NCBI RefSeq assembly: GCF_006345805.1
Contig: NC_043023.1
Coordinates: 18,166,001-18,230,000, forward strand
Reading direction: 5' to 3'
Origin: Octopus sinensis
Taxonomy: Eukaryota
Length of the DNA: 64,000 nucleotides
The notes under the pieces are model-generated. The model searched no databases and was not told where the DNA came from. It saw nothing but the letters and a program-made list of their open reading frames with translations. Positions 33,224 through 61,315 of the stretch are shown here, in pieces. The translations under genes and the position numbers were made by a program. Within the stretch, counting starts at the first letter, position 1; every line of letters starts with the position of its first letter.

Positions 33224-33405
33224 ATGTTCCAACAATTGAAATTGACGTTTGTGTTGATACTCTCTATGAGTTTCTGTTTGGAGTCTAATGCTGCGTCAGA
33301 TATTTGCTCAACATGTAGCTGCCGAAATTCTGAGACAAATATAGATTGTTCATATCGGTTCCTGACTTCGATCCCGCAACCCATTCCACCGAATGTTGAA
33401 ATTTT
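33224..33405 (+). CDS. First coding exon: signal peptide + LRR N-terminal cap of an LRR cell-surface receptor
   Basis: Acceptor TTTTATAG at 33203, ATG 33224, MFQQLKLTFVLILSMSFCLESNA (hydrophobic leader) then CSTCSC...DCSYRFLTSIPQPIPPNVEIL (LRRNT); phase-2 donor TT|GTAAGT at 33406. Confidence 0.92.
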
Positions 33406-33548
33406 GTAAGTATTCGAACTTTTTTAGCCCTCCCCAACCCCCACCGCCGCTTAACCCCCAACCCCCTCACCGCCACTTCACCCCCACAACCGCTTCACCC
33501 TCACCACCGCTTCACCCCCACCACCGCTTCACCCACACCACCAATACT

Positions 33549-33777
33549 TATTTCTTTACAACCCACAAGGGGATAAACTGAGGGGACAAACAAGGACAGA
33601 CATAGGTATTAAGTCGATTATATCGACCCCAGTGCGTAACTGGTACTTAATTTATCGACCCTGAAAGGATGAAAGGCAAAGTCGACCTCGGCGGAATTTG
33701 AACTCACAACGTAACGACAGACGAAATACGGCTACGCATTTCGCCCGGCGTGCTAACATTTCTGCCAGCTCGCCGCC
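33549..33777 (-). mobile_element. SINE family 2, inverted relative to the 32936 copy
   Basis: Reverse complement of family 2 consensus. Confidence 0.9.
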
Positions 33778-33848
33778 ACCAATGCCACCATCACAACCAC
33801 CACCACAACCACCACCACCACCAAACCACCACCACAATCACCGCCGCC

Positions 33849-34268
33849 GGCTGTGTGGTAAGTAGCTTGCTAACCAACCACATTGTTCCGGGTTCAGTCC
33901 CACCGCGTGGCATCTTGGGCAAGTATCTTCTGCTATAGCCCCGGGCCGACCAAAACCTTGTGAGTGGATTTAGTAGACGGAAACTGAAAGAAGCTCGTCG
34001 TATATATGCATATATATATATATATATAAGTGTGTGTGTATGTGATTGTGTGTCTGTGTTTGTCCCCCTAGCATTGCTTGACAAACGATGCTGGTGTGTT
34101 TACGTCCCCGTCAATTAGCGGTTCGGCAAAAGAGACCGATAGAATAAGTACTGGGCTTACAAAGTATAAGTCCCGAGGTCAAGTTGCTCGACTAAAGGCG
34201 GTGCTCCAGCATGGCCGCAGTCAACTGACTGAAACAAGTAAAAGAGAGTAAAAGAGGGTAAAGAGAGA
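33849..34268 (+). mobile_element. SINE family 1
   Basis: Head GGCTGTGTGGTAAGTAGC to (AAAAGAG)n tail; a head-only copy follows at ~34466-34630. Confidence 0.88.
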
Positions 34269-34671
34269 TAATAGTGATGATGGAATCGGCATCTTGTGTG
34301 TTTGTGTTTTTTCTTTATTACAGAAGATGCAGAATTTTCTCAATGCAAATGGATAATTAAAATGAATAGACAGATCCACTTGCGGCTCAGATATTCCCTC
34401 TGAAAGTCTATCAACGAGGTCTTACTGTCATTATTATCAGTTTATAAGAAAAAAATTAATAACACAGGCGGAGGAGTGACCTGTGTAGTAAGTAGCTTGT
34501 TTACCAACCACATGGTTCCGGGTTCAGTCCCAATGCGTGACACCTTGGGCAAGTGTCTTCTACTATAGCCATGGGCCTACCAAACCTTGTGAGTGGATTT
34601 GGTAGACAGAAACTGAAAGAAGCTCGTCGTATATATATATGTGTGTGTATATATATATATATATATATATA

Positions 34672-59376: not shown

Positions 59377-60444
59377 TTTTGTCCTACATTAGTTATATAT
59401 ATATATATATATATATATATATATATATATATATATATATTATATATATATATACATATATATACATATATATATATATATATATATATATATTATATAT
59501 ATAATATATATACACATATATATACATATATATATATAATATATATATATATATATATATGTATATATATATATATATATGTATTATATATATACATATA
59601 TATATATATATATATATATATATATAATATATATATATGTATGTATATATATATATATATATGTATGTATATATATATATGTATGTATATATGTTTAGAA
59701 ATGTTTCTATACTGTGACGCTTTCCGTACCACTATATTTCAAAATCAACGTTTTCTTTAAATTATATATATACATATATACATGCGTGTGAGTGTATACG
59801 TGTGTATGTATGTATAAATATGCTTGCATACACACATGCACACAAGCACACACACACATACACATATATCTATATATCTGTCTCTCCGTATATGAATGAG
59901 TGGTTGGGGGTGTCTCAACCAACATCTTTATGTAATTCAGTCTCTATATCAGGTAAAGGTTTTCTCTCCAGATCAGCGCTGTCTACCATCCCACACTTAC
60001 CCTGGCAGCCTGGCACTTGTATATAGAAAACTACATTATTCATATTATCATTTCTTCTTCTCCTTCTCCTTCTTCTTCCATTTCTTGTCCTTCTTCTTCT
60101 TCTTCTCCTTCTTTTATATCTTCTTCTTCTTCTCCTTCTTTTATATCTTCTTCTACTCCTTCTTCTATATCTTCTTCTTCTTCTACTCTTCTTCTTCTTC
60201 TTCTTCTTCTTCTTCTTTATCTTTCTTCGTTTTTGTTCGTTTTTATTTTCTTCTATAACTTTTTAATTTTCTTTTTTCTACTGTTTTCCCTACTTCTTCC
60301 TTCGCTCCCCCTTCATATTCGTTCTTCTCAAGCTCCTTATATCCGTTTACATTCCTTACCTTACATCTAATTTCCTTCGCCATAGTATTAAATCTTTATC
60401 ATATTTTCTATATGTCTTTTTATGAGCTGCATCTTACGTTACAG

Positions 60445-60516
60445 GTATCTGGATAACAGTAACATGATGTATATTCAACCTGGTGTCTTTGAAAATCTTC
60501 CGAATTTAGAAAAATT
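60445..60516 (+). CDS. LRR exon 10 (divergent): YLDNSNMMYIQPGVFENLPNLEKL
   Basis: TTACAG| 72 nt |GTGAGT; canonical N position is S. Confidence 0.88.
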
Positions 60517-60754
60517 GTGAGTGGGGTGACTTTTTATCGTACTATCTAATTCCCCGTATATCTTTAAATTTATTTCCTCATTCTCTCTTCCTCTCTATCT
60601 AACATACTTACTTTCACTCTCTCGCTTTCTCTCTCGCTATAGTTTTCTCCATAGTTTCTCTCAGTGTGGCTGAATGTGTTTTTGTGAAAGTAATATCTTT
60701 CTTCTACACTTCATGTTCTTTGTTTTGTAAACATTCGTTTACCTTGCTTGTTTC

Positions 60755-61035
60755 TTCTCAAGCCACGCCTGGCTCATAAGGGCCTGTTTCCCGGTTTCCT
60801 TGGCGTATAGGTTCCCCACTTTGACGGGACGCCGGTCCGTCGCAGGTGAGCTGCAAGATGCAGGAGGAAAGAGTGAGAGAAAGTTGTGGCGAAAGAGTCA
60901 GCAGAAGTTCGCCATTACCTTCTACCGGAGCCGAATGGAGCTTAGGTGTTTCGCTCATAAACACACACATCACCCGGTCTGAGATTCGAACCCGCAATCC
61001 CTCGACCGCGCTAACAACTAGGCCATGTGCCTCCA
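60755..61035 (-). mobile_element. tRNA-derived SINE family 3-like
   Basis: Minus strand GGTTCGAATCTC box B-like; body similar to 21876 copy. Confidence 0.65.
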
Positions 61036-61243
61036 CATTCGTTTACCTAACGAATACTCATCACATATCGTTCACCTTCCTGTTCTTTATCTTCTTCATC
61101 TTCTTCCTTTTCCTGCTTCCCTTCCTAAACTTCCTACCAGCACCAACTCCACTTTACTTATTCTACAACTACTATTATTACCAGAACTACTAGTATTAAA
61201 CACCTCTCCGCGTTGTTTTACCAACTAACTTTTTATGTTACAG

Positions 61244-61315
61244 ATATTTGGGAGGAAATCATATCAAGAAAATTCAAATAGGATCCTTCGATAATCTGCG
61301 CAATTTAAAATATCT
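61244..61315 (+). CDS. LRR exon 11 (type B): YLGGNHIKKIQIGSFDNLRNLKYL
   Basis: CTAAC + TTACAG| 72 nt |GTAAGT. Confidence 0.93.

Follow-up and report, generated by a model that had tools for sequence, protein, structure and literature searches.

A stretch of 64,000 nt from Octopus sinensis (NCBI RefSeq assembly GCF_006345805.1, contig NC_043023.1, positions 18,166,001 to 18,230,000 of the forward strand), hereafter called the window, contains a row of short exons, each of which encodes a single leucine-rich repeat (LRR). This locus raises the question of what kind of protein such a gene encodes and whether its exons are mixed and matched to diversify a receptor. The first-pass annotation had suggested a variable-LRR receptor with cassettes reminiscent of the variable lymphocyte receptors (VLRs) of lampreys. 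Our analysis led to a different assignment: the gene in the window, of which the 5′ part is present, probably belongs to an Octopus-specific adhesion G-protein-coupled receptor (GPCR) family, in which the LRR exons would be mostly constitutive. The array would be the N-terminal arm of a member of that family, and not a stand-alone receptor.

We scanned the window for the pattern AG/72 nt/GT with an open frame. Exactly eleven 72-nt exons were obtained, all on the plus strand and each ending at its start plus 71. The scan recovered all of the eleven intact phase-2/2 exons reported earlier, with canonical splice sites and one 24-residue LRR each. A nucleotide profile of the exons detected the same eleven (E 1e-16 to 3e-23) together with a copy at 53063-53156; beyond those 12, it found no further LRR exon copies on either strand of the whole 64 kb. 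The features of the array are as follows.

33224..33405, plus strand: first coding exon, 182 nt, ATG at 33224, 3′ end in phase 2, LRRNT-like cap
42901..42972, plus strand: LRR exon E1 (A-type), 72 nt, phase 2/2, supported by exon scan, profile and splice signals
43487..43558, plus strand: LRR exon E2, young tandem duplicate of E1, 69/72 nt identical
45216..45287, plus strand: LRR exon E3 (B-type, NNIxKIQVGxFDDLPSL), downstream intron homologous to those of E7 and E11
46857..46928, plus strand: LRR exon E4 (A-type, IKEIKVETFRNLS), 86% nt identity to E6
47785..47856, plus strand: LRR exon E5 (B-type, divergent), without the downstream intronic block
49255..49326, plus strand: LRR exon E6 (A-type), supported by exon scan and nucleotide profile
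50523..50594, plus strand: LRR exon E7 (B-type), TAG acceptor
53077..53148, plus strand: dead B-type LRR exon (ψ), with a frameshift, an in-frame TGA and the GT donor lost
56175..56246, plus strand: LRR exon E8, 95% aa identity to the matching repeat of the O. sinensis protein P0002
58327..58398, plus strand: LRR exon E9, 87.5% aa identity to P0002, collinear
60445..60516, plus strand: LRR exon E10, 79% aa identity to P0002, collinear
61244..61315, plus strand: LRR exon E11, 83% aa identity to P0002, nearest DNA relative on the O. bimaculoides contig L001

In all eleven exons, the first base completes the preceding codon, indicating that the introns are phase 2. The intron falls within the Leu codon (CT/N, with the slash marking the splice point) that opens the LxLxxN strand, which agrees with the earlier claim that each intron splits the concave strand. 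Each exon encodes the pattern xLxxNxIxxIxxxxFxxLxxLxx, in which positions 1, 3, 11, 16, and 22 were invariant across the 11 repeats. When exon 1 was spliced to the eleven LRR exons, a 324-aa open frame resulted, and Pfam recognized LRR_8 in it in 6 stretches (E=2.1e-65). The secreted or surface LRR ectodomain and the octopus origin that had been predicted are correct. The donors read GT(A/G)AGT in 11/11 LRR exons, and the acceptors were CAG in ten and TAG in one. Branch-point-like YTRAY motifs were observed at −16 to −22 in 9/11 exons; E4 showed YTRAY only at −7, and E10 showed no YTRAY motif. In the twelfth copy (53077-53148), a frameshift leads to an in-frame TGA and AT stands in place of the GT donor, indicating that this copy is a dead cassette.

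The first coding exon encodes a hydrophobic N-terminus, a CxxCxCx8C cluster, and the beginning of the first LRR. It had been described as a signal peptide plus LRRNT exon. The ATG, the hydrophobic start, and the Cys cluster are present, and the signal peptide was judged by eye from the hydrophobic N-terminus; Pfam LRRNT did not reach significance for the window protein, and for P0005, an O. vulgaris adhesion GPCR model, the match was weak and below cut-off (E=3e-4). The N-terminus of P0005 matched exon 1 with 79% identity and P0001 matched it with 69%; at the nucleotide level, exon 1 of a paralog locus, L004, was 81% identical. A homology search with the 61-aa exon-1 peptide returned no matches. 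An AG acceptor at 33202-33203 suggests a putative 5′ untranslated exon further upstream. Around this start-codon exon, we also observed an inverted repeat of ~234 nt (32936-33169 / 33540-33771), which places 33224-33405 in the loop. Its arms are two copies resembling short interspersed elements, 82-92% complementary, and the arrangement is not common to L004. A pre-mRNA duplex around exon 1 could form, which could affect skipping, circularization, or A-to-I editing.

Next, we analyzed which proteins are related to the array. Among proteins, the spliced product matched Octopus models best. P0002, the closest relative, is a 382-aa O. sinensis model named ‘SLIT and NTRK-like 4 isoform X4’, to which E8-E11 aligned one-to-one and collinearly with 79-95% identity. 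After the repeats, P0002 continues with a further LRR and an LRRCT, then with a Cys-rich module that ends in CCxGNLCN and is Ly6/uPAR-like by pattern, and finally with an alpha/beta module. A search with its C-terminal part returned 26 proteins, and 26/26 were from Octopus. Several family proteins reach into HormR, GAIN, GPS, and seven-transmembrane (7TM) domains. P0005, named ‘adhesion GPCR G6-like’, carries 7tm_2 (Pfam E=4.8e-10). Another relative, P0143, carries GPS (Pfam E=8.6e-14) with the HLT motif, and 7tm_2 was found downstream of P0143 in the O. vulgaris locus L003. The best solved-structure match to the HormR plus GAIN region of P0143 was the ADGRG6 ectodomain 6v55 (E=4.7e-24). The order in the family is LRRNT-LRRs-LRRCT, the Cys-rich Ly6/uPAR-like module, a SEA-like module, HormR, GAIN/GPS, and a secretin/adhesion-type 7TM domain. 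A previous study (PMC6408891) describes an octopus-specific, co-localized adhesion-GPCR expansion with LRRs in 5/22 members and with the highest expression in axial nerve cord, suckers, and skin. The relatives fit that description, and membership of the window gene itself is putative.

Two further features lie downstream of the array.

62237..62336: run of exactly 100 N, read as a contig join whose size is undetermined
63865..63993, plus strand: GAIN subdomain B exon (VKQNSSAKANTTIISNIIAANVPNVQIMDLDQPVTISVGLTEK), phase 0 start, just before GPS by alignment

The GAIN-B exon lies beyond the span that the first-pass annotation had covered, and it identifies the receptor class. It showed 51% aa identity to residues 342-376 of P0005 (E=2.7e-6) and 77% nt identity to the homologous exon at 31939-32114 of L003; the GPS exon itself falls beyond the window end. 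E11 is separated from it by 2.5 kb plus the gap, and the two are not directly joinable because the junction would read CT/G TAA (Leu-stop). In assembly practice, a run of 100 N is a placeholder for a gap of unknown size.

The nearest DNA relative of E11 is an exon on L001, an unplaced O. bimaculoides contig of 19.4 kb (LGKD02112155.1). This contig contains, in order, an E11-like 72-nt exon, the last 72-nt LRR exon, and LRRCT (1865-2034), followed by two Cys-rich-module exons, a SEA-like exon, HormR, and three GAIN-A exons, and it ends immediately ahead of the GAIN-B exon. The E11-like exon was 90% identical to window positions 61191-61349 (159 nt). A composite of the window and L001 exons stayed in frame whether or not the E11-like exon was included. 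We infer that the exons absent between E11 and GAIN-B (last LRR, LRRCT, Cys-rich, SEA-like, HormR, and GAIN-A) sit in the 100-N gap, possibly as L001 itself, which would require the window to be O. bimaculoides DNA. As an observation on the assembly, the gap splits the gene, and the content of L001 suggests a fixable assembly placement. Family genes are long, spanning 119 kb for P0005 and 229 kb for P0136; the P0005 and P0143 genes belong to an O. vulgaris locus on OX597842.1, upstream of 13.69 Mb. No family exons were found in the upstream part (1-33000) or on the minus strand, which hold only low-complexity open reading frames (ORFs), a weak C2H2-like ORF, and repeat elements.

Several points weigh against the assignment to the adhesion-GPCR family and against constitutive use of the LRR exons. 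No annotated protein is close to the window gene, the best reaching 84% over a third, so expression of the gene is putative. The window contains no LRRCT, GPS, or 7TM, and neither protein alignment nor the nucleotide profile revealed an LRRCT exon there. Continuity between E11 and the GAIN-B exon depends on the scaffold join across the 100 N, and the placement of L001 in the gap is putative; its E11-like exon is only 90% identical to E11, and its introns are unalignable. The closest relative, P0002, ends without a 7TM domain, so LRR-only products may exist. Pfam recognizes neither the Ly6/uPAR-like nor the SEA-like module. The AlphaFold model of P0002 was confident for the LRR/LRRCT part only and moderate for the SEA-like part, and Foldseek with this model returned LRR proteins only; both assignments are therefore tentative. 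Constitutive splicing, drawn from signal strength alone, is a default expectation and not a result.

From some of these points, one could argue that the locus makes an LRR-only product or is a truncated or decaying paralog, which we regard as unlikely. In the first case, the transcript would stop after the LRR and Cys-rich part and encode a secreted protein similar to P0002 (382 aa); in the second, the exons from LRRCT to GAIN-A would have been lost by internal deletion, leaving the GAIN-B exon to read as an immediate stop. The Leu-stop codon pair at a direct splice from E11 to 63865, the short distance between these exons, several family models with LRRs and a Cys-rich module but no 7TM domain, the lack of a close annotated protein for the locus, and the one cassette already dead are consistent with this reading. 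However, the eleven exons all keep open frames and perfect splice signals, the gap of exactly 100 N is taken as a placeholder of unknown size, and L001 carries exactly the missing exons. Moreover, the short family models resemble fragments from fragmented assemblies with contigs of 15-88 kb.

The exon layout also recalls the LGR-type receptors (the glycoprotein-hormone, LGR4/5/6, and relaxin class), which have a rhodopsin-type 7TM domain. Gonadotropin receptors have one LRR per ~72-nt exon with introns that are all phase 2 (PMC11378527), as the first-pass annotation had correctly noted for LGR-type genes, and the LGR4 and LGR5 ectodomains were among the best PDB matches (E ~1e-47). Nevertheless, LRRC15, TLR13, and IGFALS scored above the LGRs, indicating that the LRR match is generic. 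The close relatives all carry GPS and 7tm_2, not 7tm_1, and the window has a GAIN-domain exon. We therefore rejected the LGR class, which seems extremely improbable for this gene. The window gene resembles LGR4/5/6 and the gonadotropin and thyroid-stimulating hormone receptors in exon layout and LRR sequences, whereas those receptors have no GAIN/GPS and are conserved and single-copy, not a lineage-specific cluster.

If the adhesion-GPCR assignment is correct, the product would begin with a signal peptide and an LRRNT-like cap, followed by eleven LRRs, and one or two more LRRs and LRRCT would probably lie in the scaffold gap. The LRRs would form a curved solenoid, with the concave sheet as the presumed ligand-binding face. 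By homology, the Cys-rich Ly6/uPAR-like module, the SEA-like module, HormR, GAIN with the GPS autoproteolysis site, and 7TM would then follow, and the receptor would be expected to signal like other adhesion GPCRs. The layout of one LRR per 72-nt exon would be inherited and generic for LRR ectodomains.

We then considered how the exons may be used. The earlier statement that any subset of the exons splices in frame is correct because they are 72-nt phase-2 exons; yet this is automatic for tandemly duplicated exons, and in-frame skippability is not evidence of combinatorial use. A second feature that may bear on splicing was found in the introns.

43004..61355, plus strand: intronic block TTCATTGACGATAT, 9 copies, located 27-33 nt after LRR-exon or pseudoexon donors

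The block has 14 nt and is often followed by ATTACTAA. Copies start at 43004, 43591, 46960, 49357, 50624, 53176, 56276, 58428, and 61342; the block was present after 8/11 LRR exons and the pseudoexon, and absent after E5 and E10. The 9 matches, all on the plus strand, compare with 1.1 expected, and 0/100 shuffles reached 9. No copies occurred elsewhere in the window, and no reverse-complement copy was found in it at ≤2 mismatches. Between old duplicates, the intron around the block was unalignable. In the O. sinensis paralog L002 (VCDQ01005240.1), the block occurred at 4166, 4991, and 8059, 30-35 nt after three LRR exons, and it was absent after the exon that the RefSeq model omits; L004 showed degenerate versions. 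The block behaves like a selected intronic element, and it may be a splicing enhancer, which is our best guess. The strong and uniform splice signals and this shared block suggest that the exons would be mostly constitutive, with occasional skipping at most.

Alternatively, the array might be a combinatorial diversity generator. The eleven cassettes would then be skipped or selected in a regulated manner to produce numerous ectodomain isoforms with different binding surfaces, and these would serve immunity or chemosensation as a recognition repertoire of the Dscam or VLR kind. All exon subsets are in frame, cassettes were both born and lost, and the block after most cassettes could be a common regulatory element. 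In L002, an intact-looking LRR exon at 9628-9699 (SIWGNYITELNAETFRNLSSLSD, AG...GTAAGTTG) is missing from the RefSeq protein P0121, and this block-less 72-nt exon may be a cassette that is skipped or one that the annotation overlooked. The label ‘isoform X2/X4’ (predicted) is attached to several family members, and the model of P0005 uses ~3 LRR exons out of its 119-kb gene. Skipping of LRR exons is documented in LGR5, where LGR5-delta-5 is an in-frame variant (PMC4891500), and in brown-algal ROCOs (PMC11378527), and N-terminal variants are numerous in adhesion GPCRs generally (PMC6667449). Against this, donors and acceptors are uniformly strong, and docking/selector pairing is lacking, as the reverse complement of the block is absent from the window. 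RNAalifold predicted no pairs for the exons plus 60 nt of intron, so an exon-intron duplex (e.g., an ADAR editing site) is unsupported and there is no conserved exon-intron RNA structure. The ratios of non-synonymous to synonymous substitution (dN/dS) given below show no significant diversifying selection, the model of paralog L004 uses 5/5 LRR exons, isoform names come from predicted models that are error-prone in repeats, frame symmetry is automatic as stated above, and all cassettes lie on one strand. Nothing in the sequence demonstrates that exons are mixed and matched, and we consider the combinatorial use quite unlikely. An extended form, in which the clustered adhesion-GPCR LRR arrays are regulated cassettes with the ~30-nt block as control element and arm-cell-specific isoforms, appears very unlikely; if it were true, arm neurons and sensory cells (axial nerve cord, suckers, and skin) would have a Dscam- or protocadherin-like LRR recognition code.

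Three specific systems were also tried and rejected. In a Dscam-type mutually exclusive array, a docking site is complementary to selectors beside every variable exon; this type was rejected because the 9 blocks have the same orientation without a reverse complement and no consensus exon-intron pairing was predicted; in addition, joint inclusion of exons stays in frame since 72 nt is a multiple of 3. For VLR-like somatic assembly, 12/12 cassettes are on the plus strand, 11 have AG/GT(A/G)AGT, and none lies elsewhere in the 64 kb. A ROCO (LRR-ROC-COR) protein was rejected because the relatives continue into LRRCT, Cys-rich, HormR, GAIN, and 7TM. Lamprey VLRs likewise place an LRRNT ahead of LRR modules of 24 residues, and their structures were among the sequence and fold matches. 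VLRs are assembled somatically, by gene conversion from flanking donor cassettes, which are without splice sites and occur in both orientations, into an incomplete germline gene. In contrast, each module in the window is a regular exon with full, strong, canonical splice signals, all of them on the same strand, and the likeness to VLR cassettes did not hold. Brown-algal ROCOs have 72-bp phase-2 single-LRR exons with exon shuffling and alternative LRR-exon combinations (PMC11378527). Unlike the window gene, they encode intracellular GTPases in an unrelated lineage, and positive selection on the concave face is demonstrated for ROCOs but not for the window exons.

We next analyzed the origin of the array by self-comparison. 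The LRR exons belong to a B-type (consensus ...NNIxKIQVGTFDDLPSL...) and an A-type (...IKEIKVETFRNLS...), and between 45216 and 56246, they showed a two-exon periodicity (E3 B, E4 A, E5 B, E6 A, E7 B, ψ B, and E8 A). This alternation therefore points to duplication of A+B units. The B-type exons E3, E7, and E11 have up to 500 nt of downstream intron in common (73-78% identity), the flanks of E8 and E9 are 77% identical, and the identity of E4 to E6 in and around the exon is 85%. A tandem duplication of 590 nt contains E1 and E2 (42693-43445 / 43285-44034), with ~96% identity close to the exons and only 87% overall because of microsatellites. This duplication and the dead copy at 53077, with its frameshift, TGA, and lost donor, confirmed the birth and death of cassettes noted in the first pass. 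The array, as judged from these alignments, is the product of old one- or two-exon unit duplications, one younger duplication (E1/E2), and one loss. The same 72-nt exon architecture was found in two O. sinensis paralog loci, and the paralogs show their own alternating pairs (e.g., P0136), which hints at independent expansion or within-gene homogenization. We propose that single exons and two-exon A+B units were duplicated in tandem again and again to form the array, and that the gain of E1/E2 and the decay of ψ 53077 would represent ordinary birth-and-death evolution.

The dN/dS was calculated with the Nei-Gojobori method between the most similar exon pairs. Pairwise values ranged from 0.2 to 1.4. 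E1 and E2 differ at 3/72 nt, 2 non-synonymous and 1 synonymous, a ratio that is approximately neutral. The only high value was observed for E11 and its L001 copy, with 8.7 non-synonymous vs. 0.3 synonymous changes, where the neutral expectation is ~7.3 vs. 1.7 of the 9 differences, a rough comparison without a formal test. Variation is located at the ‘x’ positions, while scaffold positions are invariant, as in any LRR. These results showed no significant sign of positive or diversifying selection in the LRR exon pairs, and the non-synonymous divergence that had been claimed is no more than expected.

Other repeats were observed around the array. Long microsatellite or low-complexity tracts are located at 16200-17250, 25150-26350, 42400-42900, and 43800-44800. 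Tracts of the ATAC/ATGT type precede the gene, whereas (CTT)n repeats stand immediately before E1 and E2 and again after E2. These repeats flank the young E1/E2 duplication and may have mediated it. In intron 1, degraded retroelement ORF fragments lie at 35134-40085 on the plus strand with a weak reverse-transcriptase match (E=0.0018), and a GIY-YIG-like motif seen by eye in these fragments (IYVIKCSGCHQDYVGSTG) suggests a Penelope-like element. A short ORF on the minus strand (13517-13870) gave weak C2H2 zinc-finger matches (E ~1e-3, below cut-offs); it probably derives from a fragmented gene or belongs to a transposable element.

Among known adhesion GPCRs, ADGRG6 (GPR126) resembles the family in HormR plus GAIN, and several members are NCBI-named ‘ADGRG6-like’. 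The N-terminus of ADGRG6 has CUB, pentraxin, and SEA before HormR, and no LRR. The distal part of the octopus family is instead LRRNT-LRR-LRRCT plus the Cys-rich module, although the window itself holds one GAIN exon only. ADGRA2 and ADGRA3 (GPR124 and GPR125) follow the same LRR-LRRCT ... HormR-GAIN-7TM logic, and the family GAIN weakly matches Pfam GAIN_ADGRA3. ADGRA proteins have ~4 LRRs and then an Ig domain, whereas the octopus family has 12 or more LRRs and then the Cys-rich and SEA-like modules, and it is nearer to ADGRG6 in sequence. The closest likeness is to the octopus adhesion-GPCR ‘group 3’ (Ritschard et al. 2019, PMC6408891), which is likewise Octopus-only, with GPS and an adhesion 7TM domain, some N-terminal LRRs, and co-localized genes. 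The consulted passages of that paper contain no mention of a one-LRR-per-exon array, Cys-rich or SEA-like modules, or an intronic block.

This analysis gives the exon-level anatomy of one gene, putatively of this octopus-specific adhesion-GPCR expansion, which has been associated with suckers, skin, and the nervous system of the arm; the layout itself was already known. The analysis corrects the idea of a VLR-like or LGR-like receptor, and the array shows how a presumed ligand-binding arm grows and shrinks through exon duplication and decay. If the exons were used combinatorially, they would constitute an invertebrate LRR-based recognition code.

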